The translations under genes were made by a program, and so were the position numbers. The notes under the pieces are model-generated. The model ran no database searches. It saw only the letters and a list, made by a program, of their open reading frames with translations, and was not told where the DNA came from. DNA of 64,000 bases from Paramoeba atlantica (taxonomy: Eukaryota; Protista; Discosea), in NCBI GenBank assembly GCA_977017575.1, contig CDRNVI010000001.1:1-64000 (forward strand). The letters are read 5' to 3'. The stretch's first letter is position 1; each line of letters begins with the position of its first letter. This document shows positions 1 to 53,900 of the stretch, piece by piece.

Positions 1-139
1 GTATTGTGCCTTTTGACTCCGAAGAGTTATGGCCCCTCAACTCCCCAAACGGGCAGTCCGAATACGTCTTGCGACGTATCCGGAGAGCCAGCCATAGCAA
101 GCTACGGCTGACCTCCGCTTGGAGAGGAGTTAGGTTACA

Positions 140-932
140 GCTAGGGAGGTGGGGTGTGCTATACCCCTGCGCCTTAGGTAATGCAAATAAGGTGCCCCTT
201 GACCAAAAAAAACCACTCTATCTTTTGAGGGTGGGTAAAAAACACACACACACATTCCAAAAATTAGCCCGAATGGCACCCACCCTAGTTTCTTAGTACC
301 TTGTTATATTCGGTACCGGGCGGTGCCACCCATTCTGCATTGTCGGAATGGCATCTACCCTAACTATTTAGTGCCTCGGTTTGCTGGCACCGGGCAGTGT
401 CGTCCATATTGTTTTCATCGTGCTCACCCTAGCTATTTAGCGCCTTGTTATGCGACGCCGGGTGAGTTAGCTCGGGAGGCTGGGATCGCTAAGTCCCATC
501 ATCCGACATACAACGTAAGCCGGACGCTACATACCTAGGGTCTAGGTCAGGGCATTCGACTTTTGGTCGGATGATGGGGCGTAGCGACCCTAGCTTCCCT
601 AGCTAACTCACCCGGCGTCGCATAACAAGACGCTAAATAACTAGGGTGAGCACGATGAAAACAATATGGACGACACTACCCGGTGCCAGCAAAACAAGGC
701 ACTAAATAATTAGGGTAGATGCCATTCCGACAATGCAGAATGGGTGGCACCGCCCGGTACCGAATATAACAAGGTACTAAGAAACTAGGGTGGGTGCCAT
801 TCGGGCTAATTTTTGGAATGTGTGTGTGTGTTTTTTACCCACCCTCAAAAGATAGAGTGGTTTTTTTGGTCAAGGGGCGCCTTATTTGCATTACCTAAGG
901 CGCAGGGGTATAGCGCACCCCACCTCCCTAGC
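140..932. repeat. Long imperfect inverted repeat formed by two diverged, oppositely oriented SINE-1 copies
   Basis: 140-508 is the reverse complement of about 566-932 with scattered mismatches; spacer about 57 bp. Confidence 0.9.
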
Positions 933-1069
933 TTAGGCGCACGACTGACAACCCTTGCTGCGATGATCTGCTCTCGCGCGGGTTGAGCGCCGAGAGGCAC
1001 CTCAGCTCTAATCTGGGGAAACCATAGCCCTCGTTGGCCAAACGGTTTTAATAACAATAACAAAAATAA
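546..1069 (+). mobile_element. SINE-like element family 1 (composite of hairpin modules, (AAT/AAC)n tail)
   Basis: Near-identical to 47071-47597, which has a 13-bp TSD; A-rich simple-repeat tail 1050-1069; CTAGGGT at 535-541 and 1070-1076. Confidence 0.75.
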
Positions 1070-1557
1070 CTAGGGTAGGTGTCACTCGGAGGATTGCTTT
1101 GTTAACATCAGGGAGTGCGGGTCTGTACCACTGCGGTGGGCGGCCGGATGGGTACAGCGCTTGCAACCGAGGAAGTCGCGTCCTCGGGCGTCTCCCAGCG
1201 AGAAGAGTCACCTTGCTGCTGCGGAGTGGCGAAATGCCTACCGCGCGCAAGGTCCTGTCTAGGAAAGATTATTTCTTTCCTAGCAGTGGCACGACCCATC
1301 AGGCCAACCATAGGCCAAAATTGGATCAGGACAACCATAGGCCAAAATTGGCGGGTGTAACAGTTTTCGTGCCCCCCCCCCTGTATATAAATTTATTTAA
1401 TATATAAATTTATTTTATATATATATAGATTTTTTTTTTTTTTTTTTTTCACTTGAACGTTCGGCCTGTTCGCGAAGCTGTGAACGGGTCAGAACCATAA
1501 AAAACTTTTTACTATGGAAATAGTGGATTAACGTCCTAGATAATAAAATAAATATAT

Positions 1558-6853: not shown

Positions 6854-7206
6854 ATGGCATGCGTGTACGAAAACGGCCTGAATGACGCGGCTTGGAGCCC
6901 AAAGAGGGTATGGTCGCGTATACACTGGAAAACTGAACGTCCGACCCAGGAAATGATGCAAACATTGCCGATACATGCACGTCGGGTAAAGCCGCTACGA
7001 CTGCACCGAATTAGAGATTTGATGTTGCCACACGTACGTACACGCTTTGATCAGATATGGGGGAAGATAACGAATCCAACAGGATTACTACCCCAACTAA
7101 AACCCTCCCCTGTCACAACAAAGGATTTGACGCACTCAGATATCAAATCTTTAATGCAGGCTGACATAATCGAGCGCGTGGAACATACGTACAGCAACCC
7201 CACAAG
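6854..7206 (+). pseudogene. N-terminal fragment of YR-element Pol (pre-RT), truncated
   Basis: QTLPIHARRVKPL...RTRFDQIW matches LPLHVKK...TRFRKV in 44511-45107 and IPLHIKK...ERFDETW in 37673-40438. Confidence 0.7.
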
Positions 7207-8438
7207 ATGCATACGTCTTTCTTGCTCAGACATGTGGGAGCTACGAGAGGTATAGTGGTGATTGGTGCATCGTTCGTTGGGTTAATAAGTAGTTCCCACA
7301 CTTGTGTGAAGCGTTCTCGCGTAGGCGCATTCATCAAAGAAGTTAAACGTTCCAGGTACAGCGGCGGTACATGTTTCGCGTGGATAGGTAGCGTCTGCAT
7401 CTGCTCCGCCGTAGGGCGGCATGTTCGGCGAAACATTCTGGTTATCGTACGTCGAATACCGTACTGCATTTTCTCCGTGATTCCGATCCACCCACCTTGG
7501 TATTCGAGCGTCTTAGATTTCATAGGAGTTTGGTCAGCTTCTGACTTCCTAGTGCCAGTGCAGTAGTCTCGTTCATACCTGCATAGCGCATAAGGGTTGA
7601 CAATTGTTTGTGTTTGGCCAGCTGCATGACTTGCGGTATAGTTATGGAGCCTTTGGCGACTTGCCACATCAGGCATTGGACTGATCCATGCTTGAAGGAG
7701 TGGGAACTGTAATTGCTCCCCAGTCCTTTCTTGAGCGTCCGAGTGAGGTCTTGTGTTGTACAGTTACTGATCCGCTGATGCGGGCTTAACCTCTTCAAGT
7801 AGTTGTAGATACGCCTGGTGGTTTCTCCCTCGATTACCACTAGATTGTCGGGGCGGAATGGTTGTGCCTTGGAGGTTTTCGATTTCGTACCCCAGTTGAT
7901 GGTAATACGTGACGGGCGGAGCACTATAGCATCCTTCCTGCGTAGCTTGGCGATTTCCCCAGCCCGGGAAGCTATTTTGAAAGCAAGGAGTGCAACCACT
8001 GCTCTGTCTTCCGGCATGCTCATAAGCGTTTTCTGCAAATCCTTCTTGGTTACTGGGGCCGCCTGGTGCTGTGGGATAGATGCCCCCTTGCGGATCAACA
8101 CTTTCGTGTACATTTGGGATTGCCGCGTACAGAGTTCCAGTCGCTTCAAAATTGCTATAAGGTGTTTTAGGTACGTGAGCTTGGTCTGTGTAGATATCGG
8201 GCGTCCCATAATAAATCGTATGACCCCCGTATCCGTAATGGGTATTCCCAAACTCCGCATATAGCATAGCAGACGGCACCTGGTAGTCCATGTTGTCTCC
8301 GCACACATAGGCTTCAACGTCTCCATTACCGAAGGAGATGTCATGTTGAGGAAATTGGACATAACGTAAGGGGGTCTGTTCCTGGTATGTTGTGTCTCGG
8401 TGGCTGGGTAATATTCGATATTTTGATGTGGGATCCAT
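7207..8438 (-). pseudogene. Pol frame overprinted on the YR, one TAA at 7764, truncated at about 7210
   Basis: ORFs 7764-8438 and 7143-7676 are in the same frame with a single stop between them; contains QTLPIHAKHVPPL. Confidence 0.65.
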
Positions 8439-8772: not shown

Positions 8773-9681
8773 TCAGTGCTGTGGACCGATCCCCCGTCCA
8801 CGAAAATCCGGAGCGCGTGGTGCGATGGTCGCTTGACGCGTAATGCCATGTTCTAGTATGCCAGTCCGATTTATGGGGGTCCGATTTGCATATACTCGCC
8901 CTCGTATCGGCATGCGAGGCGTATAGCGGGTCCGCTGGGGTCCACGGCTCGTATACGTGGTTGCTTGATTGTAGGTTACGCTTTGCTCAATTACATTACC
9001 AAGTCGGTCCTGTGGGTCTTTCTGGGTAACGTATTGTGAGCGTATATATCAAGCATCTGCTCCTCGATATATTCCTTGCAGAATGCGTATCTGGTCAACT
9101 GTGCTTTGGCCGACGTTTTTGTGATTGACGGCGTCGCTGTTCACGCCCCCTCTTTCTGCGCTATCGTCTATCCAAGCACACAAGATATCCCAAAGGGCTT
9201 GTAGCTGTGGCGACATTCGAGAAGGGAGATCCAGCGCCGTTCGCAACCGCTGTTTCAATATTTCAATCCCTAGTGGCCCCTGGGTAATGTATGTGTTCTA
9301 TGTTGTAACGTCCCGGGGGTTGAAACTGTCGTTCGTCTCTTCTGATGGTGCAGTTTCATCGTCCGATTCGGGCAATTTGCCTGGCATCTTTGGCTCACTT
9401 GCTGATATCACGATGCGCGTATAACACACGTTGCTATTAGGCAGAGGATAGTTACCCCATGGGTAGGGAACAATGATAGGATTTTCCTCGTCTCCATTGT
9501 CCTCTACCGTACCTCGCCATGTTGTCGCTGTCTCTTTCCTACCTCCAACGGGGAACCAGGTTACTTCGACTTCTATGTCATTCTGTTGCATGGTCGCCAT
9601 AACCTCATTGACTTGACTCTCTACTTCCTCTGGGAGCATAACCCTTTGTGCGGCGTATTGCTTGTTGAGCTCTTCTGGCAC
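8773..9681 (-). pseudogene. Gag-like ORF1 with in-frame TAG and TGA (also present in each tandem unit)
   Basis: ORFs 9298-9681 and 9049-9258 share a frame; the TAG falls at a conserved Trp of the 4313 homolog. Confidence 0.7.
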
Positions 9682-9751
9682 ACTGCATCTCTTTTTGGAT
9701 CCGTAATGTCTCTTTTCACTTTTATTCGTGCGAAATACAAATAAGAAAAGT

Positions 9752-9788
9752 CAACAAGGTACAGAAACTGTATCTTTATCGTTAAAGT
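9752..9788 (-). other. Spliced-leader exon copy (also in tandem units 2-4, about 14845, 19938, 25030)
   Basis: ACTTTAACGATAAAGATACAGTTTCTGTACCTTGTTG; euglenozoan ACAGTTTCTGTAC core and TTG end; not followed by GT. Confidence 0.8.
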
Positions 9789-10159
9789 CAACTTTTATTC
9801 GTGCGAAATACAAATAAGAAAAGTCTGTCTAATTTTGCAAATAATATCATACCGTAGTTCACGAATAAATCCTTCATGTTTAATTCCTGACACTAGTACA
9901 AAGGCCCAATTACATTTTCAAGAGTTTTATTAAGGCAGGGTAGTGGATTAACTTGTTAATCCACGCTGGGGAGTAGCGAACCCCTCCTACCCTGGAGCTA
10001 ATAATTATTGGTTTCCTTTCATAGGAGGATAAGTCGGGTGTGTGCCCTCTATGGTTGAGATTACTCCTGTGTTGGCACAGATGCTTCGAGCATCAGCATC
10101 CGCACAGCGGACCTAGGCTGGAACTAGGGGGCCATATCTCTTCGGAGACAAACGGCCTT

Positions 10160-27195: not shown

Positions 27196-29301
27196 ATGTC
27201 ACGACCGAAGGGGAAAAGGGGACAAGATCAGAACGTAGGCAGCATTGAACAATTTACTAGCGTATCCGGCCGACCCCCTCCTCGATGGATGGAGAAAAAG
27301 CGGCGTTTTCTTACATCCTGCTTAGAAAATGGAGGGGAAAATTCTTTTTTTAAGGAACTTTTTGTAAATATGTTCCAATCATTTGCGAGTGAGCATGAAT
27401 CTCTTTTTCTCAGTTACGTCGAAACTTTATTGCTTGAAGACCGTACCAAGTTCATTATTGAGGAGCGCAAGGAGCGTGAAATGATAGCATGTAAATTTCA
27501 TGGAGGTTTATTTAGTCTTAACGGCGACGGCATACCAATATTCTGGGACGATAATTCTACGTCGCTTCAATTTTCGTTTTCTTTTTGTTGGACGGCGCGA
27601 AGCGTTGATGCGCCGCGTTCAATGAGTGATGAAAGTAGTGATGCTCCTCTCGCTGAAGACGATGATTCTGAACATGTGGAAATGTCACATTGCGTAAAGA
27701 AGCAATTCGTCTCCAACGTGAAGATTTGTCTGTGTGATTCCATGGATTATTTCATGCATCAATCAGACTACTTCGTACGTCTCCCAAAGAGGGGAGGACG
27801 GTTTCCTCATTACACTAACCTATGCAAAAAACTGAAATCTGTATATCCGAGCATTGCTGAACAAATCGAATATCAAATTCTTCGTCTTTGGTGGCAAAAA
27901 CGCGAGAAGCTCGGAGACGAGTCCTTAATTCCTAAGAATACATCTAACCAACGACCAAGCATGTTGTCATTCTATGAACCCCTCATTCGCAGGCTATTGA
28001 ATGAGCTAATATTTTACGGAATTCCTGTAGGTAAGAACCTGCTCTGGGCAATTACACGTGAAGCAATCATGCACGATTCTGACGACATTGATTATCTAAC
28101 GAAACATCTCGTAGACAAAGTTAGATCTGGTGCCAAGGTAAAAGATGAAGAAACGTTTATACCATCCTATCATACCTTCATCCGGTGGCTGTCGAAAATG
28201 GATATTTCAATGAAATCGACAAGAAATACACCCGAAGGCGCTCTACCAACAAATTTAAACGACCTTGCGCGAGATATGCTACTGCGTATATGTTATTATG
28301 TAGGCATAGAATGGAACGACAAGGTTATTTCCCCTCTTCTAATTAACATGGACGAAACTGCCGTCGCCTATAATTCTCTTGCGGAGCGTGGCTTAACATA
28401 TCAGGGGCAAGAAGCGCATAGCATTGCAGTAGGAGACAAACGAAGCGCAACTCTTGTAACTGCTGCATCTTTAAGCGGTGATTTGGTTCCACCATTCGTG
28501 ATCTGGAATGGAAAAGAAGCCTATAAGGGTGCGCACGTGAAGACGTATGACACGACGGTTCAGTACCAAACTGAAAGTCACTACATTAGCACAGGGGCAT
28601 TCAAAGAATTTTTGTCACGCATTCTTCAGCCATATCATGAAAATATTGTTGGAAAACTGGATTTATCGACTCACACGCCTATGATTCTGCTTATTGATTG
28701 TTGCAGTGTTCATACATCAAGCGCTACCAAAGAACAGATTATTTCCCAATGTAATTCGAACGGAGCATTTCCGTGGCTGCGAATTGTATTTGTTCCTGCG
28801 CGATGCACGAGTGTGCTTCAACCATGCGATGTGGGGATCTTTAATCGATTGAAACCTAAAATACGGTACGAACGAACGTTGGTTCTTCTGTCGTATTGTA
28901 AGTATAAGAGACAAAATTCTGAATTGATTGGAAGGGCGAAGGAACTGAGTTCTCGTTTAAGTAAGGAACAACTTCTCCGTTCGATTCATAAAGCATATGA
29001 ATACATGAGCTCCCCAGAGCAGCGCAAAGCAAATGAGAAAGCATGGGAAAAAGTAGGTATCACTAGTTGCACGTTGGAGGATCGTCGCAACTTGGTTGAA
29101 GCATGGGGAAATCGAAGACGCTTATTTCCCTTGAGCGACGACTACCACCCATTAAGTAGTGACGAAAATACGGATTCCAAGGATGATTTCGAGGATATTC
29201 CCATTGAACTTGATGACCAACAATGGCTTGGTGTTGACACAAATGTCAATTCATTTTTTTTATTTCTGTCCGTTGGACAGAACTCAAAATCGGGAAGCTA
29301 G
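27196..29301 (+). CDS. pogo/Tigger-family DDD transposase, 701 aa
   Basis: LINMDETAV, ILLIDCCSVH, FVPARCTSVLQPCDVGIFN; DD43D spacing; uninterrupted. Confidence 0.9.
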   Translation: MSRPKGKRGQDQNVGSIEQFTSVSGRPPPRWMEKKRRFLTSCLENGGENSFFKELFVNMFQSFASEHESLFLSYVETLLLEDRTKFIIEERKEREMIACKFHGGLFSLNGDGIPIFWDDNSTSLQFSFSFCWTARSVDAPRSMSDESSDAPLAEDDDSEHVEMSHCVKKQFVSNVKICLCDSMDYFMHQSDYFVRLPKRGGRFPHYTNLCKKLKSVYPSIAEQIEYQILRLWWQKREKLGDESLIPKNTSNQRPSMLSFYEPLIRRLLNELIFYGIPVGKNLLWAITREAIMHDSDDIDYLTKHLVDKVRSGAKVKDEETFIPSYHTFIRWLSKMDISMKSTRNTPEGALPTNLNDLARDMLLRICYYVGIEWNDKVISPLLINMDETAVAYNSLAERGLTYQGQEAHSIAVGDKRSATLVTAASLSGDLVPPFVIWNGKEAYKGAHVKTYDTTVQYQTESHYISTGAFKEFLSRILQPYHENIVGKLDLSTHTPMILLIDCCSVHTSSATKEQIISQCNSNGAFPWLRIVFVPARCTSVLQPCDVGIFNRLKPKIRYERTLVLLSYCKYKRQNSELIGRAKELSSRLSKEQLLRSIHKAYEYMSSPEQRKANEKAWEKVGITSCTLEDRRNLVEAWGNRRRLFPLSDDYHPLSSDENTDSKDDFEDIPIELDDQQWLGVDTNVNSFFLFLSVGQNSKSGS

Positions 29302-36148: not shown

Positions 36149-36200
36149 AGCGCGTGAAAAAATATAAAGAAAAAAAAATATAAAGAAAAGGAAAATAATT

Positions 36201-36238
36201 CAACAAGGTACAGAAACTGTATCTTTATCGTTAAAGTT
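36201..36238 (-). other. Spliced-leader exon at the 5' end of CRE A
   Basis: Full SL-like 38-mer preceded by an A-run and followed by AATT, a pyrimidine-rich UTR and ATG at 36148. Confidence 0.8.
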
Positions 36239-36267
36239 TTTTTTTTGCGTGTCAGTATAAGACTCTT

Positions 36268-36922
36268 TTTTTTTTTTAAACGCGGCATTGCCTCTATATT
36301 TTTACCCAGTAGACGAACCAAGTAGGTCCATTGGGGGGGGTTATATGATTTGTAAACAAAGGGGGTTACATGATTTGTAAACAATTTTAGGCCTGCAAAC
36401 GTATATGTCACTGTCACTCTGTTAGCGGGGTTCCCCCCACCGGAACCCTCGACCAACCTGCCCGCACACACGTCACACAAAAGAAAACCTGTATAAAAAT
36501 GCCCGGACACATAGTAAATCATATATAGAAAAGAAATCATAATCAAACCTCACTTACAGAACTCGTACAAGGATAACGATAGCAATAGATGACCAGTCCA
36601 CTGCCACGCCCTTTACAAGCTCACACGAGCTACACAGGTTACGCTTTCAACCTCTGCCCATGCACCAACTTGGGAACTAGAAGTGTGGAGCAAGTAGGCG
36701 AGGTGTACGGCCGTGTCAACAGTGATGCGGTTAAAAAACATTAAGGCGTTAATCGTAGAATAAAGAAAGCTTTACTCATCTTTATCTCACATTGGGGAAC
36801 CTTGTTTTCGAAAAAAACAAGGCGTGAGGATAAAGCCTGTCAACCGATTAACATCCATAATCTTCCAAAAATTATAGGGACAACCTCCAAACCCCCGGAT
36901 CCCGTCCGCTCTTTTTTTTTTT
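36268..36922 (-). mobile_element. SINE-like family 3 with a CRE-type 3' tail and poly(A)
   Basis: 540-bp body plus about 110 nt matching the 3' ends of CRE A and CRE B (CCCCCCAATGGACCTACTT.GTTCGTCTA; GCAATGCCGCGTTT). Confidence 0.65.
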
Positions 36923-40438: not shown

Positions 40439-42661
40439 TTACGCCACATGTGGTCCGGGGATCTGCATCCAAAGCATAGAAAAGTCCGTCGTTGGGGGAA
40501 ACCAGTCGGCCGTGTCTGTCCAGGCGAGGGGCGCGTTGCCAATGCAGGAGGTGAACCGGCAAACGATTGATAACGGGCATATTGTTTCTGACGATCAGCT
40601 AACTGGTCACTCACATGATGGTAGAACTTGTCCTCCGGACGTACATCCTTCTCCAATTTCAGATGCACTAACTCCACATCGACACGGCGCGCGCGCCAAT
40701 ATGCGTCCCGCATGGTCTGTATAATTCCACGTCCCATCTCCAGATACACACCCTGGTTCCACTGCGGAGTAAGGCGCGCATAAATCAACCACTTGCAAAA
40801 CACTGTGTTGAAAATCCGTTCTTGCTGTTTCACGAAAGCTCGATCGTATATTTGACCTTGTTGATTACTAAAAACATACCCCCCATGCGCCCCTTCAACC
40901 CACCCCCCTCCCAGAGGAAAACCCCCTCGTATCACCGCCCCTTTGTGGCCGACGTCGCCCCCTTCACCCTGCGCCCTCCACTTCGTTGCTCCCTTCGCTC
41001 ACCCTGCCTCAACTCCCCCGCTCCTTCGCGGCCCTTTTTCGCCCCCCTCCGCGCCACGATCTCGGCCGCCCTCCCGCTCCGGTGCTCTCCTCGCCGCGCT
41101 CTCCCTCGCTGTTTTTTTTTGCTCCCTCCCGTGCCCCCCTCCGCGCTCCACGCAACGCTCTCCGTCGCCCTTCCCCTCTGGCGCTCTCCTCTCACGCTCT
41201 CCGCCGCTGTTTTTTTTTTCTTCGTTGCCTTCGTCCTCCCCTCGCCACCCCCTTGGTCGCCCTCTGTTGCCCCCTACGTCGCTCTGCCGCGCCGCTTTTC
41301 GCCCCCCACCCACTGCGCCGTCCCCCTCGCCGCCCATTCCCCCGCCCTCCCTGCTCCCACCTGCGCCACTCTTTCCCTTCATCCCCTCTGCCACCCCCTC
41401 ACGCTGCATCTCGAAGAATGGCGCCGCCCGGTACCGAATATAACAAGGTACTAAAAAACTAGGGTAGGCGTCATTCACGCTTTTTCTTTTCTTTTTTCTT
41501 TCTTTCTGCGGTTTGCAACTAGCCCATGATAACGGGGCTAGGGTAACAATTTGGAGAGATACGAGCTTGTTGAAGCTGAGATTTGGCCTGTTGAAGCTGA
41601 GGAGCCAGTCCGCTCGAGGGGATACCACCCTAGAAGACTTGGTCCGTTGAAGCTGAGGTGCTAAAACCGTTGAAGCTGAGAGTCGACACTCCCAAACTAT
41701 GCCAGCAAGAAGGCAAGGGGTCAAGGAGCACTGCTTTTGGCAGTGTCGGGGTGTGGCGAACCCCACCCTCCTAGCTAATCCAGCTTCCCGCAGCGGACTT
41801 TCAGTCTGCGCGTTAGCTGGATCGGCTTGCATTGGCTCTGTGCTGCGCTCCTTTTAGGTCTGCGCATGGGTCGTGCGGGTCGGAGCTACCTTCGGCTCTC
41901 TCCGAGGAGGCAACACCCCGTCTACGGGGTTTTTACCTGATACATAACATAACATAACATATTTGATTTATACGCAATTCAAATTCGGGCGCATCCCGAA
42001 GCTCCCTAATCAGGTCGCGTGTTCGGAAACCATCATCGTCAACTGCATTTATCCATGGACCGAACGTAAGGGGCTCATAAGGATTCAGGGCGTTCGGGTC
42101 GACGAGCAATGGGGCTCCATCTGAGGGATTTTTTGATGTCGAAACGAGCGGTACACCAATAGATCGTCCTCCGGCCAAATCGTTACGATTCGAAAAAGCC
42201 TCGTCGTGTAGTGGGCCCGGCGGCCGACCAGATGTCGACTGTAGAGCCACTTGAGTCGGATTTGAACTACTCGTTGAAGGATTAGAACTACTCGCTGAAC
42301 TACTCTCTGGCGGAGAATCGTCAATAACTTGAACAGCGTAGTAATCAAGCTCGGGGTGCGGAAACGGATACTCCTTGCTGGGTTTATCCTCCCATACGGC
42401 CCATAATTCGAGGCCCTCCTTTCGAACCTTTCCAAACAAAGTCTGACGACCCGCCTCGCTGTCATCCTTGCGCCGAAACGTAGCCTCCACCTTCATTACG
42501 GGATGATTTCCTGGCTTTAACATAAGCTTTTCCCGTACTACCGTACATACTAAACTCAGTTCCTGTTGCGTCAGCGGCTCGGTAGGCTCGAGCGACTGCA
42601 CAGGAGAGGAACTTCGCGAAGAGCGTAACGCCCGTGTCGATGGTGCGTCGATAGTTGGCAT
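40366..42661 (-). pseudogene. Gag with a CCHC knuckle, interrupted by SINE-2
   Basis: CFGCRSPDHMWRNC; deleting 40867-41968 fuses ORFs 41933-42694 and 40366-40935 in frame (ELRINQQGQIY). Confidence 0.8.
40867..41962 (+). mobile_element. SINE-like family 2, about 1.1 kb, (AACAT)n tail
   Basis: 6-bp direct repeat TTGATT (40861-40866, 41963-41968); a second copy is inverted at 50217-56058. Confidence 0.8.
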
Positions 42662-43990
42662 GAAAAAAAAACATTTTCTGTCGCGAATAGTCAAAAGAAG
42701 CTAAAAATGTCAAAACGTATGATTACCACAATAAACTTCATAACGTATTTACACAAGGGGGGTACATGGGGGGTGTAGAAAACGAATGTCAATATTATAT
42801 TCGACCAATTCTCTCCGTAAACTATAAATACCTTTCTCCTCTGTCAGTCGCAGGACCTCGCGCAATTCCATTGAAACCCCCTCTGACTTGGAGATCCTCC
42901 TGTTCAGTGCAGCCTGACAGGAGGTGTTATCAACGAAAACATCCAAGCAGGTTCCACGGGGGCAATGCGCGGAAAACTTCTCGAGGGCTAGGCGGACTGC
43001 TGCAGCTTCCGCACGATTCACCTCATACGAGGAGGACTCAGGCCACGCCTCTCCCGTAATCAAAACCTCTCCGCTGTCTAAATACATAATCGCTCCCCAC
43101 CCTTTCACCGAGGCATCGGTGTAGAGACGATGCTTGTGTGGAACAACATCGGGGTGGGGAGGTGGAGACCGTGGAACATTCTCCAACAACTCGTTTCTCC
43201 ACTCTGTTAGCATGGAGCGAGTGACGACAGGGAGTGCGACCGGACGGTCACATAACTTCGGGCAACGGTTCAACAAATTGATAAGCCGTTGCGCCACCTT
43301 CAGAGCGAAATAAAATCGCGGCATATTGAGCCGGAGAACTGCGGAGCCATAAATGAGGCGCCCCACCACCGCCTCTAGGTCAACAAAGGAAATGTTGAAG
43401 AAAGAATCGGCTCGCAGTTTCCTGATCACTCGCGGTCCCAGGCAGACCGTATGCGCATTATGGTCGAACGACACCCCATTAAACACGTACTGTGCTACAG
43501 GGGCCTGACCCCGATCTTTGAAAAGACCGTTCGCCTTATCGCAACGCTCATCAATGAACTGAGCGTACGTGGTGGCCTCGGAGTTGGTTCCTGCAAACCG
43601 AACTCCGTCAACATAAACGTCGATAGCGCCTCGGTGAAACGAGTAGCGCTGAGAACAGACCGACGTCTCGCCAGCAATCGCGGCGGTAATCGTGTGCATA
43701 ACCTCCGGTGCACACCTATGGCCCATCGGGAGGACGTTCATCTCATACACGTCTCCACTGTTCGTTCTAAGGCGGAATTTGGGCCGCGCCCTCTTCGGGA
43801 TACCAATCTGGTAAAACCCGCATGTGAAGTCCCGCTTCACAGCCATCGGCTCGTGCGCCTTATGAAGGTACTTGGAGGGATGATATAAAGGGACCTGTGG
43901 TTCATATCCTTTAAGTCTATCATTATCGTCCCGTGTCCACGAAATAAACCTTCTGCGCTGATTGCCCTGATCATCGGTCTCCACAACCGT

Positions 43991-45013
43991 GAAGGGAATC
44001 ATGAACTGCATCGATGGGCGCTTTCTCAACTCCTGCGCCGGGACCTTGGAGATTATGCCTGCGTCCTCTAACAATCGGACGTCCGCCGCAGGCAACGAAC
44101 CTTTCACATTAGGTTCGGGGTACGGGGCTTTAGGTACCCATAATAGCTCGTTCACTACCTTGCGAAATCGAGTGGCTGCTGACATACTCATCCACTCCTT
44201 AACCTGATCCAAATAACAGGTATCGACTTCTTGACATGCAAAGGTAGGTGTGCGTCGTGTGCCTTGGCTAGCCGTGAAGAGCGGCGTGCACAAACAACGG
44301 AGTGCCTGCGAAGGTAAGGCACTTCCCCGAAGCACTTTGCCACGTGCTTCGAGGTTACAGCACTGGAAGACGTCAGGGCATTCGAGGAAGAGTCAGGGCA
44401 TTCGACTTTTGTCGGATGATGGGGCGTAGCGACCCCAGCTTCCCTTGCTAACTCACCCGGCGTCAGTACAACAAGACGCTAAATAACTAGGGTAAATAAC
44501 TAGTAGAGGGCTAGAAGGGAATCATGAACTGCATCGATGGGCGCTTTCTCAACTCCTGCGCCGGGACCTTGGAGATTATGCCTGCGTCCTCTAACAATCG
44601 GACGTCCGCCTCAGGCAACGAACCTTTCACATTAGGTTCGGGGTACGGGGCTTTAGGTACCCATAATAGCTCGTTCACTACCTTGCGAAATCGAGTGGCT
44701 GCTGACATACTCATCCACTCCTTAACCTGATCCAAATGGATAACAGGTATCGACTTCTTGACATGCAAAGGTAGGTGTGCGTCGTGTGCCTTGGCTAGCC
44801 GTGAAGAGCGGCGTGCACAAACAACGGAGTGCCTGCGAAGGTAAGGCACTTCCCCGAAGCACTTTGCCACGTGCTCCGAGGTTACAGCACTGGAAGACGT
44901 CAGGGCATTCGAGGAAGAGTCAGGGCATTCGACTTTTGTCGGATGATGGGGCGTAGCGACGCCAGCTTCCCTAGCTAACTCACCCGGCGTCGCACAACAA
45001 GACGCTACATACC
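43991..45013. repeat. 523-bp tandem duplication of the Pol N-terminus plus SINE-1 module 1
   Basis: 43991-44490 repeats at 44514-45013; the first copy has a 4-bp deletion. Confidence 0.85.
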
Positions 45014-45110
45014 ATAAAAGTAAAGGTCTTAATAAAAGTAAAGGTCTTAATAAAAGTAAAGGTCTTAATAAAAGTAAAGGTCTTAATAAAAACAAAGGTC
45101 TTAACAAAAG
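45014..45110. repeat. 18-bp minisatellite x5
   Basis: ATAAAAGTAAAGGTCTTA. Confidence 0.95.
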
Positions 45111-46155: not shown

Positions 46156-46411
46156 TATTCGAAAGGTAATATTGAAATTGTCCGGAAAATGGGTCTGTGC
46201 TGTTATAGAAATTTGAGATAGAACTACTGGGTAAGATTGAAGCTATGTATCAGAAGAAAATGAAAATATGTTTTCTTGTAGTATGAAATTCTAAGCCTAG
46301 GCAATGGCATTACGTATTAAAAATGTTACGTATGTGAAAGCATATTACAAACTCTATAATATAGTTTTCTTACCGTGTTTGTCAGATTTCTTGATTTTTT
46401 GTAACAGGCGC

Positions 46412-48073
46412 ATGGAGCAGTGCTCGAAAAAGTGCAAGGACTCTTCTACTGGAATCGTAGAAGGGCCTATTCCCTTATCAGAGCTGTGGTCTGTCGCTCT
46501 TACGCTTAACAAAGGAGATATGGTACATTTCAAATGGCGGTTAAAGTCATCAAATGGTGGGAAAGCAGATCCTTGGCAAGAACAACAAGGTTACGTGAGA
46601 TACGTAATTTTGGACGGGGGAGATGACCCGGCCGAGGACAACTACTGCTGGTTGAAGTATCATCTTCCTGGAGAATATGAGAAACGAACAGTTGCGTTCC
46701 CACAAGACGGGCTATATGACAACGATGAAGTCGAATATACATCACTCGTGGTCGTTCCGGCAAAGAAGTCTTTTCGTATCCCAAAGAAGAATGAATCTGT
46801 TGAAGATTCGTCGTCTTGTTCGGAAGACATAGAAGACAGCGATTTGCTCCAAATTTCGGACTCGGAGAGCTCTGTGCCGTGCGGAAAGCCTAGTGAAACC
46901 ATTGCCGACGACCCCCGAGTTGCTATGGATCCTGAAGTTTGGCCGAACGAAATATTCACTCCGATGCATTTCTTCACGTTGCGGCAGTATTACCGTGACA
47001 TTCTGGATGACTTTGGTTACAAGCACCCGAACCGCACAGTTTTGGAGATTCATGTACAGCGCATTCGACCGTCAGGGCATTCGACTTTTGGTCGGATGAT
47101 GGGGCGTAGCGACCCTAGCTTCCCTAGCTAACTCACCCGGCGTCAGTACAACAAGACGCTAAATAACTAGGGTGAGCACGATGAAAACAATATGGACGAC
47201 ACTACCCGATGCCAGCAAAACAAGGCACTAAATAATTAGGGTAGATGCCATTCCGACAATGCAGAATGGGTGTCACCGCCCGGTACCGAATATAACAAGG
47301 TACTAAGAAACTAGGGTGGGTGCCATTCGGGCTAATTTTTGGAATGTGTGTGTGTTTTTTTTATCCACCCTCAAAAGATAGAGTGGTTTTTTTGGTCAAG
47401 GGGCGCCTTATTTGCATTACCTAAGGCGCAGGGGTATAGCGCACCCCACCTCCCTAGCTTAGGCGCACGACTGACAACCCTTGCTGCGATGATCTGCTCT
47501 CGCGCGGGTTGAGCGCCGAGAGGCACCTCAGCTCTAATCTGGGGAAACCATAGCCCTCGTTGGCCAAACGGTTTTATTAACAATAACAATAACAACAATG
47601 TACAGCGCATGCTCCACGTAATTGCAATGTTTCGCGGTCAACGAAGCCTCTCTTCTGATCCCAAATGGATTGCTAGCGTTCGTGACACGATACGTTCCAT
47701 TGATGTGATCCGGAAGGAAAAGCAAGGCTATACAAAAGCGGTAATTAGCGAGCTACAGCGATGTTACAAATCTAAGGCAGAACCAGCGTGGATGCGCGCC
47801 GTGCATCAGAGTGCTTTACAGAACGTGAAGGCAACGACCGTACAGTATGACCCGCAAGTGACATATTACGCAAAGCGCCAAAACGCGGCCCCAAAACCGG
47901 GAGGCACAACAACCCAGTCCGGTTCATTGGAATCAAAAAGCGCAGCCAAACGCAAGAAGAAGAAGGAAGCACTTTCTAGCAGAGTAGATAGTGTCATCTC
48001 TAAGTTGGGACCTGCATTTGACAAGTTATCGGTTGAAGAAAAGTCGGTGTTCCGTCGTGGGGGTTTTCAGTAG
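46412..48073 (+). pseudogene. Gag-like ORF of a VIPER-like element interrupted by SINE-1
   Basis: Removing 546 bp joins EIHVQR to MLHVIAMF in frame; pyrimidine-rich tract ending TAACAG before the ATG. Confidence 0.75.
47065..47597 (+). mobile_element. SINE-like family 1 copy with a 13-bp TSD
   Basis: ATGTACAGCGCAT at 47052-47064 and 47598-47610; (AAT/AAC)n tail. Confidence 0.88.
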
Positions 48074-48750: not shown

Positions 48751-49424
48751 GCCGTGCCCTGCGTAGCCACGACTCTGCGAGGATCTGTGAGGAACAAGTC
48801 GGAAGAGCATGACGCCGGCTACACGATGGTAGTGGATCCCGATCTCGAGCGCCATAAATGCTTTTCAGTTCGGTTGGGGAATGCTGCTTTCCTGTGCTTT
48901 GTTGTGTTTAAAACGACGGAAGCCGTGCCCTGCGTAGCCACGACTCTGCGAGGATATGTAAGGAACAAGTCGGAAGAGCATGACGCCGGCTACACGATGG
49001 TAGTGGATCCCGATCTCGAGCGCCATAAACCCTTTTCAGCTCGGTTGGGGAATGCTGCTTTCCTGTGCTTTGTTGTGTTTGAAACGACGGAAGCCGCGCC
49101 CTGCGTAGCCACGACTCTGCGAGGATATGTGAGGAACAAGTCGGAAGAGCATGACGCCGGCTACACGATGGTAGTGGATCCCGATCTCGAGCGCCATAAA
49201 TGCTTTTCAGCTCGGTTGGGGAATGCTGCTTTCCTGTGCTTTGTTGTGTTTAAAACGACGGAAGCCGTGCCCTGCGTAGCCACGACTCTGCGAGGATATG
49301 TAAGGAACAAGTCGGAAGAGCATGACGCCGGCTACACGATGGTAGTGGATCCCGATCTCGAGCGCCATAAATCTTTTTCAGCTCGGTTGGGGAATGCTGC
49401 TTTCCTGTGCTTTGTTGTGTTTGA
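48751..49424. repeat. 171-bp tandem repeat x about 4 with alternating variants
   Basis: Units at 48751, 48922, 49093, 49264. Confidence 0.95.
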
Positions 49425-50975
49425 AATTAAGCTTGTGAATTTTATTAAGCTTGTGAATTTTATTAAGCTTGTGAATTTTTTTTTGTGTAATATCTTCGGT
49501 TTCTTTATCCGTTGCACTCTCGGAGATTTAACCCCCGTGAAGATCTCATTCGTCTTCAAATGATCGAGAATTCACGTTTAGACGGGCGAGACGTGATCTC
49601 CTTTACCCCCCATTATCTTCCCTCTACCTTATATCCCATACCGTAAACTTATAATAGCTATATTAATTATACTTTTTTTTTAAAGTTTCCAAGGTTTTTG
49701 TTTTTAAAGTCAAATTCTAGAGGCCCATGTTTTGTGAATCGTCATTAGATAAATAATTTCTCAGCTGAGAGAATACAATCGACTTTTTTGTATTAAGACC
49801 ACTTTTTGTATTAAGACCACATTTTTTGAATGAATATCTACCCGTAATCAAAACCTCTTTTTTTTTACACCATTTTTATAAGAACACCATTTTTATAAGA
49901 ACACCCTGCATAATTAATCATAAATAATTCGATCAGCATGCATACTTCTTATTCTACATATAAATGCTTCAATTACTTTCACAAGATCTCATTATCGTAT
50001 AATGATGATGTATATTTATAAGAAGATTTTTTTTGGGGGGGGTGTGCACCCCCCCTAGGCCCACCGGAAGCCTACCCTCTTTTCATATGGATTTTCATCA
50101 TATAAAAATCCATTTCTAAAGAAAATACCTTTCTTTCTTAAGCAAAAAGGAGTTTTGTCCTTTTAATAGCCCTCAGAGTTTCCAAAAAAAAAAGCCCTCA
50201 GAGTTTAGTGTCCTGTTTGTTTGTTTGTTTTTCAGGTAAAAACCCCGTAGACGGGGTGTTGCCTCCTCGGAGAGAGCCGAAGGTAGCTCCGACCCGCACG
50301 ACCCATGCGCAGACCTAAAAGGAGCGCAGCACAGAGCCAATGCAAGCCGATCCAGCTAACGCGCAGACTGAAAGTCCGCTGCGGGAAGCTGGATTAGCTA
50401 GGAGGGTGGGGTTCGCCACACCCCGACACTGCCAAAAGCAGTGCTCCTTGACCCCTTGCCTTCTTGCTGGCATAGTTTGGGAGTGTCGACTCTCAGCTTC
50501 AACGGTTTTAGCACCTCAGCTTCAACGGACCAAGTCTTCTAGGGTGGTACCCCCTCGAGCGGACTGGCTCCTCAGCTTCAACAGGCCAAATCTCAGCTTC
50601 AACAAGCTCGTATCTCTCCAAATTGTTACCCTAGCCCCGTTATCATGGGCTAGTTGCAAGCCGCAGAAAGAAAGAAAAAAGAAAAGAAAAAGCGTGAATG
50701 ACGCCTACCCTAGTTTTTTAGTACCTTGTTATATTCGGTACCGGGCGGCGCCATTCTTCGAGATGCAGCGTGAGGGGGTGGCAGAGGGGATGAAGGGAAA
50801 GAGTGGGAAGGGAAAGAGTGGCGCAGGTGGGAGCAGGGAGGGAGAGGGAATGGGCGGCGAAGGGGACGGCGCAGTGGGTGGGGGGCGAAAAGCGGCGCGG
50901 CAGAGCGACGCAGGGGGCAACAGAGGGCGACCAAGTGGGTGGCGAGGGGTGGGCGAAGGCAACGAAGAAAAAAAA

Positions 50976-53900
50976 AACTTTAACGATAAAGATACAGTTT
51001 CTGTACCTTGTTGAATTTTTCTTTCTCTTTATTGCTTACTAGGGTCGCACCATGCCGCCCGATGATTCCTTTGATGCCAACGCGTTACCAATGGATGATG
51101 ACTCTTTTCGCCAGGAACAAATGTCACACAAACCCGGAGATTGGGACCAATTCGCAGGAAACGCTCACCTGATTTCCGGCCAAAGCACCTACAATGAACT
51201 TTTGTATACGACACCTATCCCCGAAAACTTACCTAAACACTGGACCGAAAGAGCCTACAAGATCGCGGCAGAGGAACCTACACCGGACACAGGCAGAATG
51301 ACCGCGGACGAAGAGACAAATCACTCCCTTGTCGTGGCAAACAACGTGGGAATTACTTCGGAGGCCTCATCCGCCCACATTTTCTCTCCAACTAAGGCTA
51401 CAAAGCGCAAGAATACTGATTCTGCCCCTACCACATACCACAACGCCAATACGCAGCAGAAGGATGTAGAACGTCAATGCCCAGCAGAAGGATGTACGTG
51501 GAAAACCCCACCACATAGCAGAAAATGGCAGGCATTTTATCACCATGTGGCTCATCGACACGGCAAAAACATTCCAAACGAGTGGTGGGAGGGAGAGGGA
51601 AGATTCCTCTGCAGAGATTGTGGCAGACACTACGCCAAGAACAAGCTCAAGTCTCACCCCAAAAACTGCAGGGGCCGCAACAATTCCGGACGGTCATTAG
51701 CCCCACCTCTTCCAACGGCACGTCCCCAAAACGCAGAAGAAAATCCAACAGACAATTTGCCATCACTCGGCTCCATCTGCGCACTTCCCATGAGCACCTG
51801 CAAAGACGTCCCACACTGTTGCAGATTCCTCTGGGCGAGCATCCTCACGCAATCCTTGACATCCGCAGTGAAGGAAAACACGGTAGAGGCATGGACACTT
51901 CTCGCAATGCTCCCTAAGTGTGTCCTACCAGCACCTTTCCGAGGCGGTCGCAAAGGCCACACATCATACTCTACGTACGTCGAAAACCGCATGAAACTGT
52001 GGCTAGCGGGGGAGTACCTCTTGCTATGGGAAGATGCCGAGAGGGATCATTATAAAAAGCGCTCCAGATCACGCGACTCCGAAATCGATGCAGACAGAGC
52101 GGCAATTCGAGCCGAACTCTTGGCCCGCCAGGGGGAATTTTCCAGGGGAATGGAAGCCCTAACCGCAGCCCCCATGGCGCCAGACAACGCAGATACCCTC
52201 GAAAAGCTCTTGGAGAAGCATCCAGTCCCACACGAAAATCCCTTGCAGAATGATCTACCACCGATCGAGGGCAACCCCCTACACCTAGAGGAAACAGAGG
52301 TCAAAAAAGCGATCGTCAGCTTCCGCAGGGGATCTTCCGCCGGCACGATGGGCCTTCGTCCAGAGCACCTCCAGGCAGCCATCTTGGAACATGTGGACAA
52401 GGATGTGAATCCTCTCTCGGCCCTCACGCGACTAGTGAACCACATGCTTCAAGGAAAAGCGCCACAAGACGTCCAATCATTCTACGCTGGAGCCCGGCTC
52501 TGCGCCCTGGAAAAAGGCGAGGACGATGTTAGACCAATCGCAGCGGGTGAAACCCTTAGACGCCTCGTAAGCAAGGCGGCATGTATCTCGATAAAGGAGA
52601 AAGCGGGTACTCTGTTCAACGGGCGACAATATGGTGTAGCAGCCCCCTCGGGAGCCGAACGAGTTATCCACCTCTGCCGGAGAGCCATGCTCAATAACCT
52701 GGGGAGTGACAATTTTGTCTTCTGCAAAGTGGACTTAAGAAACGCTTTCAATAACGTCAGCAGGCCTGTTCTCACCCTAACCACGCGCTTAAATTTCCCC
52801 GAACTCTCACCTTGGGTAGAGTGGTGTTACTCCAACGTGAGCTGTCTTACCTACAGAGACAATGTCATACCCTCGGCGGAGGGGGTACAACAAGGAGACC
52901 CACTAGGCCCTCTTCTCTTCTCTCTAGTACTATCCAGTGTAACAGAAGAAATATCGTCTCGGTCGAATCTAGACACTCAACTTTGGTACCTAGATGACGG
53001 GGTACTCATAGGGGAGGCTGAGGAGGTCAGGAAGGCGCTCGATGTTTTTTCCGATGTTGGCTCCCGATGCGGACTTTTCCTAAACCCATCGAAATGTGAG
53101 ATAATAACACCGCCTGCTTCATCCCATCTCACAGGATTATTTCCAGAGATACCGAAGGCTAAAACTCGTACTGATGGAAATTTCGACATCTTGGGCTCCC
53201 CGATTGGGTCAGCGGAGCATTGCGTGGAGTTTCTCAGGTCAGAAGCCATTGAGCCCGCACGCGAAACACTAGACGCAATAGGTCTCATAGGAGACCCACA
53301 AGTAGCCATGTCCCTCATCCGGCAGTGCACTGGATTCTGTCAAATGGTCTACGCACTTCGCACGACACCCCCTCATGCGCTTTCTGAGCTTTGTAATTCC
53401 CTTGATGAAAATGTTCTAAAAGCCGCGGAATGGGCACTTTTCCCTCTGGATTCCCACGCGCGTGACCAAATCCAACGTAAGAAGCGCAACGGGGGTTTTG
53501 GTCTCAGGTCTTCGCTCCTCCACGCAACAGCAGCATATGTCTCCTCCGTTGCGCACGCCGCCGATGCAGACGATTGGGACCCTTCAGAAGCCGAGGGATT
53601 CACCACTTCCGTGCAAGACGTGAATAGAAAGGCGGGGGTAGAACTTGTGGATCCCGGTACAGGACGCATCCCGAAACAGAATAAACCACATCCAGAGTCC
53701 AGCCAAAGACACAACCTCACCTCGAGAAGCAAACGCCCACGACACATACTCAACAACATGGACGCGGATAAGACGGCCGAGCCGGAAATGGTTATCCCCC
53801 GGCAGCAGCAACTGAGCCAAGCCATATCGCAGCAGGAATTCACTACAGCCTACGGCCAGGCCGACCCCCGCACCCGAGCACGATGGGTTTCTCAGTCAGG

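Follow-up and report, generated by a model that had tools for sequence, protein, structure and literature searches.

A covarying RNA hairpin common to LINE 3′ untranslated regions and short retroposons of a euglenozoan genome, and its triplication in the body of SINE-1

In the eel pair UnaL2/UnaSINE1, a stringent recognition hairpin with a sequence-specific loop is found both in the 3′ untranslated region (3′UTR) of the long interspersed nuclear element (LINE) and in non-autonomous elements, and known stringent recognition elements of LINEs and short interspersed nuclear elements (SINEs) lie at the extreme 3′ end. The protein of R2, a LINE with a restriction-like endonuclease (RLE), binds the RNA of the R2 3′UTR, and SIDE elements are non-autonomous derivatives of R2. 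Ribozymes of the hepatitis delta virus (HDV) type are carried by retrotransposons at the 5′ end of R2 and, as “Pr77,” in the trypanosomatid L1Tc/NARTc, and in nematodes the Ur element, a stem-loop with a motif that pairs with the SL2 spliced-leader RNA, directs trans-splicing. At the level of element architecture, SINEs have middle bodies or central domains, namely CORE, V, Deu, Ceph and Meta (Kojima 2018, PMC5786205; MetaSINEs, PMC4824008), and the published LINE-derived bodies come from the 5′ regions of animal RTE and Vingi LINEs (PMC5786205, PMC4824008). The present report concerns an RNA cassette in positions 1 to 64,000 of contig CDRNVI010000001.1 (assembly GCA_977017575.1, listed under Paramoeba atlantica), a stretch of 64,000 nucleotides referred to below as the window. 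Three consecutive hairpin modules in a short retroposon, SINE-1, had been pointed out there in an initial annotation, with a self-cleaving ribozyme or an element recognized by reverse transcriptase (RT) as candidate roles. We find that the three hairpins are real, selected RNA structures and diverged tandem copies of one cassette of about 55-65 nt, and that this cassette is common to the 3′UTR of an RLE LINE and to the retroposons.

Fold, covariation and strand

The three units follow one another at 596-807 on the + strand, are 69-75 nt long each, and have different sequences but one shared architecture. From the base upward, a variable outer helix ending in CCC/GGG(U) is followed by a 5-bp inner helix closed by a G·U pair, a loop of 9-12 nt in general and 9-11 nt in these three units, usually ending in AACAA, and, on the 3′ side, a conserved A-rich bulge of 9-10 nt (UAARWAAYUA). 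Fold energies were calculated in ViennaRNA and z-scores were taken against 200 shuffles per module: the minimum free energies (MFE) of modules 1, 2 and 3 on the + strand are -19.6, -19.5 and -29.5 kcal/mol (z -4.6, -3.5 and -3.8), with 0/200 shuffles folding as well, while the - strand of the three gives poorer folds (z -2.2, -3.5 and -1.3). All modules fold alike, with z from -3.5 to -5.5. The conserved motif CTAARWAAYTAGGGT occurs 12 times in the window against 0.1 expected, and stop codons, read from the sequence, are found in all three sense frames of each module. The initial annotation had described three sequences with one fold; all the features it listed are present and ViennaRNA agrees with them. 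Its drawing is right for the core fold and needs two changes. The hairpins were drawn too short, as the outer helices continue 6-7 bp outward, and the “one G” shown as single-stranded forms the closing G·U pair with the U after the inner stem in 17 of 18 distinct sequences, being replaced once, by A-U.

Those sequences come from a module search, by pattern scan and by covariance models (R1 and R2, filters off), over the window and additional loci of the same genome, ≈190 kb on other contigs, which were reached through near-identical relatives of window proteins and later through one locus-encoded open reading frame (ORF); L004, L008, L011, L012 and L013 below are such loci. The window holds 12 full modules: three in each of three SINE-1 copies, one in each of two copies of a second element, SINE-2, and one in an isolated fragment made of a SINE-1 head and module 1. 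One further module is truncated, and beyond these 13 neither the pattern scan nor the covariance model gave anything above noise in the window. The weak covariance-model matches (7-14 bits) in LINE ORFs and elsewhere have outer stems only, with the diagnostic core deleted, and are treated as noise; a metagenome scan with a degenerate module pattern gave two matches, both lacking the hairpin context and due to chance. Nine more modules in the additional loci bring the total to 21 instances (18 distinct sequences) of about seven paralogue types.

In the 12 window instances, 86% of alignment cells are paired, a share that drops to 29-41% if the 3′ partner is shifted 1-3 columns out of register; for all 21 instances the figures are 87% and 29-47%. 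Pairing in the inner helix reaches 99% across the 18 distinct sequences, and compensation on both sides is seen at three of the six pairs of this helix (UA/CG, GC/AU and CG/UA). In the outer helix, CCC changes to UCC or UCU by transition, the pairing being maintained as G·U. The unpaired bulge and loop-end positions are 83-100% conserved, against 55-72% for variable stem positions. Sequencing reads add two observations on module 2: most of the family, as judged from reads, carries T at both 47197 and 47248, so that a 7-bp outer helix is complete, and a divergent subfamily seen among read variants has an A-U to G-C compensation in the outer extension. The shuffle counts (0/500) overstate significance because few paralogue types exist; the covariation pattern is qualitatively clear despite this. 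Compensatory change in both stems around fixed unpaired parts, as claimed earlier, is thus borne out, and the collection of copies and covariance model that had been proposed uphold the covariation qualitatively, within the limits of about seven paralogue types.

The sense strand, i.e., the strand on which the host elements carry their tails, is the folding strand. The G·U pairs can work only on this strand, and one of the LINE modules described below (module a) folds at -16.6 kcal/mol in sense and -10.7 kcal/mol in antisense (z +1.2), the antisense lacking the fold. A count of G·U against A·C over all 19 pairs shows a weak asymmetry (23 vs 17 without the invariant closing pair), because the outer-helix register differs between paralogues; the strand call is based on the core pairs and the fold energies, not on that count. 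Together, the compensation, the strand-specific G·U pairs and the conserved unpaired nucleotides support the earlier view of a structured, cis-acting RNA on the tailed strand.

Elements that carry the cassette

Outside SINE-1, the cassette is found in the 3′UTR of an RLE LINE. Loci L012 and L013 have two module-3-type hairpins (LINE modules a and b) 134 nt apart, ≈210 and ≈345 nt after an ORF stop, and L008 has a single module after an RLE-domain ORF, which is an a/b recombinant with the 134 nt between the two modules deleted; the covariance-model matches of these modules score 53-59 bits (E around 1e-17). The ORF upstream of the modules in L012 and L013, 121 aa as called and with the motifs GPDL, YDITVVH and KQKY, matches, at 35% identity (E = 5e-31), the C-terminal CCHC-plus-RLE part of an ORF of the same genome that bears an RT and is itself related to the CRE-like LINE of the window (E = 7e-15), where CRE-like RT ORFs are present. 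The module-bearing 3′UTR ends in 18-bp tandem repeats followed by poly(A). In public contigs the word depth of module 3 is ≈10 times that of modules 1 and 2 and ≈300 times that of single-copy flanks, depth here not being copy number, and the flanks that diverge from module 3 match the module-bearing LINE 3′UTR; the module-3 type is therefore carried mainly by the RLE LINE. The LINE of L008 is 5′-truncated and interrupts a 120-bp satellite array (6900-7900 and 9170-9760), its tail being a long array of the 18-bp repeat.

The CRE-like LINE of the window has a 3′UTR hairpin of its own (Table 1), which is kept in all CRE-like 3′UTR copies fetched. Its ATAACAAGG motif is found only in the modules, in this hairpin and at one further site. 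The sharing of (A/G)UAUAACAAGG between this loop and that of module 3 is suggestive, but too short for a conclusion, and we take it as a lead only. The element (50979-55092) encodes a 1198-aa ORF that contains an RT domain and whose N-terminus is weakly LsmAD-like, and has a complete spliced leader (SL) at its start and A12 at its end; the next SL copy directly follows the A12, so that elements are chained tail to SL head.

SINE-1 itself is a mobile retroposon that moves through RNA. Excision of copy A together with one copy of its target-site duplication (TSD) restores an ORF of 407 aa. This ORF (46304-48073) is otherwise open and has no Pfam match; a 154-aa ORF just downstream of copy A (47609-48073) has a 96-aa clustermate, P0015, on contig L011. 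Copy B is 98% identical to copy A across 526 nt, while copy C differs from these types in its head and 3′ domain; a full-length relative of the copy C subfamily, with a 10-bp TSD and a (CAT)n tail, lies at 15978-16507 of L013. Between subfamilies with different head hairpins and 3′ domains the three-module block is 94-96% identical, and the tails are variable microsatellites, either AAC/AAT-rich or CAT. Copies B and C stand head to head, with arms at 139-507 and 566-933 (≈370 nt, 96-97% complementary, 58 nt apart) that would form a long double-stranded RNA hairpin if transcribed through. The modules given earlier for 607-802 are thus accompanied by the same trio on the - strand at 266-477, which had gone unmentioned.

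The name “SINE” holds in part. SINE-1 is a short non-coding retroposon with target-site duplications and a simple-repeat tail, but no tRNA (ARAGORN) and no tRNA, 5S or 7SL RNA (Rfam) was found in SINE-1 or the window; lacking an RNA polymerase III-type head, it is more safely called a “SINE-like” retroposon. Its head is instead a conserved hairpin starting with GTCAGGGCAT, at or near which all copies begin, suggesting a defined 5′ end, and the 8-bp helix of this head covaries between subfamilies (CAUUCGAC, CGUCCGGC or CAUCCGGC paired with GUCGGAUG). A further hairpin, GGGG...CCCC followed by a CCTCCCTAGCT-like sequence, is present in both the 5′ and the 3′ part of SINE-1 as well as in SINE-2 and a 5093-bp repeat unit.

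SINE-2 is otherwise unrelated to SINE-1, and the recurrence of module 3 in it, as first noted in the initial annotation, is confirmed in both copies (Table 1). The module of the + strand copy is 86-92% identical to SINE-1 module 3, from which it differs by a compensated A-U to G-C pair in the outer helix, and a polypyrimidine tract directly follows it, as in the LINE. A third retroposon family, in L004, has one divergent module directly upstream of a 3′-terminal hairpin and AAC tail that it shares with SINE-1; like SINE-2, it has a single module. Broken copies are also present. The isolated head and module 1 are 97% identical to positions 6-108 of copy A and lie inside a tandem duplication of 523-527 bp, and the second, truncated head and module 1 abut 18-bp tandem repeats. 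The duplication (43991-45110) adjoins the start of a - strand RT/RNase H ORF (42749-44335), and the complement of the 18-bp repeats (45014-45110) resembles the 18-bp tail repeats of the module-bearing LINE.

The window is otherwise rich in repeats. A tandem array at 8210-28700 consists of a 5093-bp unit in 4-5 copies (99-100% identity), the fifth being a partial one near 36180-36680. Every unit has a retro-copied SL in antisense between 34-bp direct repeats, as well as part of the CRE-like LINE 3′UTR, also antisense, 18-bp repeats resembling a microsatellite, and an ORF of 514 aa; the final unit leads into a DDE-transposase-like ORF (27196-29301). Within an ORF-like region, a 171-bp tandem repeat is present in about four copies of 97-98% identity (48751-49563).

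Table 1. Coordinates of SINE-1 copies, modules and related hairpins (window positions unless a locus is named; CM, covariance model).
Feature	Position	Strand	Details
Module 1, copy B	596-663	+	Core hairpin 607-650; CM match 74 bits; z -4.55
Module 2, copy B	664-732	+	Core 676-718, extended helix 668-727; CM match 86 bits; z -3.46
Module 3, copy B	738-807	+	Core 746-798; CM match 83 bits; z -3.81
SINE-1 copy A	47065-47597	+	533 nt; 13-bp TSD ATGTACAGCGCAT at 47052-47064 and 47598-47610
Modules of copy A	47121-47189, 47190-47258, 47264-47333	+	CM matches
SINE-1 copy B	546-1070	+	Head, three modules, linker, 3′ domain, AAC/AAT-rich tail ending at 1070
SINE-1 copy C	1-545	-	Runs off window start; other subfamily; modules 410-477, 341-409, 266-335
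SINE-1 head hairpins	552-573 (+), 481-520 (-); L013 16483-16514 (-)		
GGGG...CCCC hairpin motif	576-604, 905-933, 41745-41775, 9972-10000		
Module-3 copy in SINE-2 (41209-41960)	41412-41481	+	Fold -29.3 kcal/mol, z -5.5
Module-3 copy in second SINE-2 copy (50218-50978)	50691-50760	-	CM match
Isolated SINE-1 head and module 1	44392-44501	+	Breaks just after GGGT; CM match 57 bits
Second head and module 1	44919-45011	+	Truncated after inner hairpin; partial CM match 44986-45011
Module-3-like 3′ half	1071-1089	+	Fused directly to copy B tail; junction within A-rich bulge
CRE-like LINE 3′UTR hairpin	54841-54867	+	9-nt loop shares UAUAACAAGG with module 3 loop

What the cassette may do

The explanation we favor, with a probability of roughly 0.55, is that the cassette is a LINE-derived, cis-acting protein-recognition hairpin that was triplicated in the SINE-1 body and serves as a retrotransposition signal. 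On this sequence-based reading, the cassette would have originated as a component of the RLE LINE 3′UTR and would have been acquired by several non-autonomous retroposon families: SINE-1, where three copies form the conserved body beneath varying heads and tails, SINE-2, with one, and the L004 family, with one placed directly upstream of the 3′-terminal hairpin and tail. It would serve the sense-strand RNA in cis, as the site that a retrotransposition protein recognizes or on which it assembles, the most plausible binder being the RLE LINE's own ORF product, in parallel with the R2 protein on its own 3′UTR. The helices would present the invariant unpaired nucleotides, and several copies would raise avidity. 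We infer protein binding and a role in the priming of reverse transcription or in the assembly of the ribonucleoprotein (RNP). The RT-recognition alternative of the initial annotation has gained real, if partial, support in this way, because the module occurs twice in the RLE LINE 3′UTR with the same sequence and structure.

Several observations weigh against this explanation. The modules are internal in both the LINE and SINE-1, at 165-270 nt from the tail: LINE module b ends ≈165 nt before the 18-bp repeats and poly(A), and SINE-1 module 3 ends ≈265 nt before the terminal hairpin and tail, so that neither the extreme 3′ placement nor the common tail type of a shared LINE/SINE recognition element is seen. 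The 3′ end of SINE-1 (a terminal hairpin and an AAC/AAT or CAT microsatellite) is unlike that of the LINE (18-bp repeats and poly(A)), and because 3′ ends and tails differ, a SINE-1/LINE partnership is at most putative. No LINE with the 3′-terminal hairpin of SINE-1 was found in the ≈250 kb searched, where that hairpin is present only in SINE-1 and the L004 element. The L004 module lacks the AACAA loop ending, and the effective sample, at only about seven paralogue types, is small.

Unlikely, in our view, is that the cassette is a functionless by-product, a stable hairpin that stalls reverse transcriptase and so provokes template switching, duplication, recombination and copying between RNAs. 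Traces of such events are present: one public contig has a head-to-tail duplicate of exactly the 53-nt hairpin, with breaks at the hairpin base; the L008 module recombines LINE modules a and b; at 1071 half a module is joined, at its A-rich bulge, to the SINE-1 tail; and the breaks in module 1 at 44493 and 45011 lie at or close to the bulge. Neutral hairpins would decay, however, whereas the seven paralogue types keep both helices by compensated changes and keep the same unpaired nucleotides while their stem sequences differ. Template switching therefore explains the spread of the cassette, not its conservation.

Quite improbable is a role in RNA processing or stability, in which the hairpin would mark or shield the boundaries of transcripts made polycistronically, for instance by stopping exonucleases or by setting where polyadenylation or trans-splicing takes place around a polypyrimidine tract. 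Polypyrimidine tracts do lie directly after the module in SINE-2, L008, L012 and L013, and the genome uses SL trans-splicing; but there is no such tract after SINE-1 modules 1 and 2 or after the L004 module, and three tandem copies in one short element are a poor fit for boundary marks.

The trans-splicing machinery enters in a second way. The genome is euglenozoan, with SL trans-splicing in use, and the window has eight SL copies (core ACAGTTTCTGTAC), which we take to resemble the SLs of diplonemids. The loop, 3′ stem and bulge of module 3 (768-786) are antisense to this SL in a match of 10+7 nt: AACAAGGTAC and AGAAACT in module 3 are the reverse complement of the SL 3′ half, bar a 2-nt insertion, the loop end, 3′ stem and bulge of the module-3 type reading AACAAGGUAC-UA-AGAAACU. 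The antisense alignment score of module 3 was reached by 2/5000 shuffles, and the SL-complementary 10-mer is confined in the window to the antisense strand of the eight SL copies and to five copies of module 3. Predicted SL duplexes of the module-3-type and LINE modules have energies of -17 to -22 kcal/mol, matched by 1-10/300 shuffles, while for modules 1 and 2 shuffled sequences do equally well.

Module-3-type hairpins might thus be devices that pair with the SL and capture SL RNA or SL-capped RNAs, an idea drawn from the complementarity that we also consider rather improbable. In one version the SL RNP would be recruited to a downstream polypyrimidine/AG acceptor, giving SL-headed retro-RNAs that consist of 3′UTR only, and the LINE would manufacture its own SINEs via trans-splicing; in the other, the retroelement RNA would be tethered or circularized through the SL. 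Besides the antisense match, a polypyrimidine tract and AG immediately after the module in SINE-2 and the LINE 3′UTR fit this idea, as does AACAAGG in the loop of the CRE-like LINE 3′UTR hairpin. Modules 1 and 2, however, keep the fold and the unpaired motifs and have lost SL complementarity, so that SL pairing is not common to all modules; the inner helix ties up half of the complementary nucleotides, the intramolecular fold being about as stable as the duplex; and the DNA searched contained no SL-headed derivative with its joint at the downstream AG. The match may be a fossil of the origin of the module. It may, then, record where the cassette came from or reflect a special function of the module-3 type, and, if functional, it would link retrotransposition to trans-splicing.

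Self-cleavage at CUA|GGGU, by an HDV-like ribozyme or a new class, was the headline proposal of the initial annotation and is now very improbable. A compact, conserved and sense-strand-specific fold with invariant unpaired nucleotides would suit a ribozyme, and two DNA junctions do lie near CTA/GGGT, at 1071 and 44493. Against this, Rfam 15 at gathering score gave no match in the whole window, whether to an HDV-like or other ribozyme or to any further family, and at E up to 10 no ribozyme family and nothing relevant in SINE-1, SINE-2 or the LINE 3′UTR, the best matches being to unrelated families with E ≥ 0.1, far below their gathering scores; the Rfam search that had been suggested thus lends the proposal nothing. 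Covariance models of hammerhead, twister, twister-sister, pistol, hatchet, hairpin and Hovlinc ribozymes likewise had no match in these three sequences. The MFE fold is a simple hairpin of two helices; a second domain and the nested double pseudoknot of HDV are both absent, and no pseudoknot partner is available, because loop and bulge are both A-rich and cannot pair together. Positions are also unsuitable: modules lie at varied internal positions and never at the element 5′ end, module 1 beginning ≈55 nt inside SINE-1, module 3 at least 200 nt inside SINE-2, the LINE copies in the 3′UTR and the L004 copy near the 3′ end. Full-length copies keep all three modules, and the listed break points in public contigs fall at the hairpin base (47270-74 and 47322-28), with no pile-up of ends at 47313/47314 (CTA|GGGT). 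We see no sign of self-cleavage at this site.

A DNA-level role, as cruciforms or double-stranded binding sites, is hardly tenable: each module is an imperfect palindrome and the modules stand in tandem, but only one strand can form the G·U pairs, among them the closing pair, which hardly varies, and those produced by the change of CCC to UCU; folding of the antisense strand is weak or fails altogether, and target duplications and tails show that the host elements move via RNA.

Three further candidates were rejected. An H/ACA-type (SLA1-like) guide for the SL would need a two-sided pocket, and the internal loop has 0-1 nt on one side against 9-10 nt on the other. A mini-intron (GU...CUAA...AG) would need more distance than is available; the module, moreover, contains no polypyrimidine tract, and none of the public-contig joints shows a spliced-out form. 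An origin of the module from a C/D-box or tRNA-like RNA found no support in ARAGORN or Rfam.

Comparison with known systems

Hardly anything has been described of the transposable elements in this euglenozoan lineage, which is rich in repeats; the genome paper of Diplonema papillatum (PMC10161547), whose SL is resembled by that of the window, defers their analysis. The cassette is a concrete, covariation-backed RNA that connects at least three non-autonomous families with an RLE (CRE-like) LINE family, and can serve as a search model for annotating such elements. As a target of ≈55-65 nt with two conserved single-stranded motifs, it also offers a route to how RLE LINE proteins choose their RNA.

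The nematode Ur element resembles the module-3 type only, as a hairpin upstream of a trans-splice acceptor with SL-complementary sequence. Organism and sequence differ, the complementary target here is the 3′ half of the SL exon, not the 5′ splice site, and neither module 1 nor module 2 has SL complementarity. With the HDV-like ribozymes of retrotransposons the modules have in common that they are structured RNAs borne by retroelements of related organisms, and a superficial G-stem-CUAA likeness; unlike them, they lack the double pseudoknot, a covariance-model match and placement at the 5′ end.

In R2 and SIDE, too, the LINE is of the RLE class and non-autonomous derivatives carry structured RNA of its 3′UTR, the binding by protein being, in our case, inferred. 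No sequence or Rfam similarity to R2 is seen, and short repeated hairpins stand here in place of one fold of ≈250 nt. UnaL2/UnaSINE1 likewise have a hairpin common to the LINE 3′UTR and non-autonomous elements, with stems free to covary. Those hairpins adjoin the shared 3′ tail repeats, whereas the modules here are 165-270 nt away (≈50 nt in the L004 family), and the eel tails are common to both partners, whereas those of SINE-1 and the LINE differ.

A further likeness is to the central domains of SINEs. As in these, a conserved internal block lies under interchangeable heads and tails and recurs in otherwise unrelated short retroposons: the three-module block is common to SINE-1 types A/B and C, and single modules are found in SINE-2 and the L004 element. 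As in these, too, part of the block can be traced to a non-coding region of a LINE. The donor here, however, is an internal 3′UTR hairpin of an RLE-type (CRE-like) LINE in a euglenozoan, the block consists of one hairpin in three tandem copies that show explicit covariation, and there is no polymerase III head. SINE-1 is a clean case of a SINE “body” built by triplicating a LINE 3′UTR hairpin. The cassette thus parallels the LINE-derived SINE bodies, but with a new donor, in a new clade and with a new architecture.

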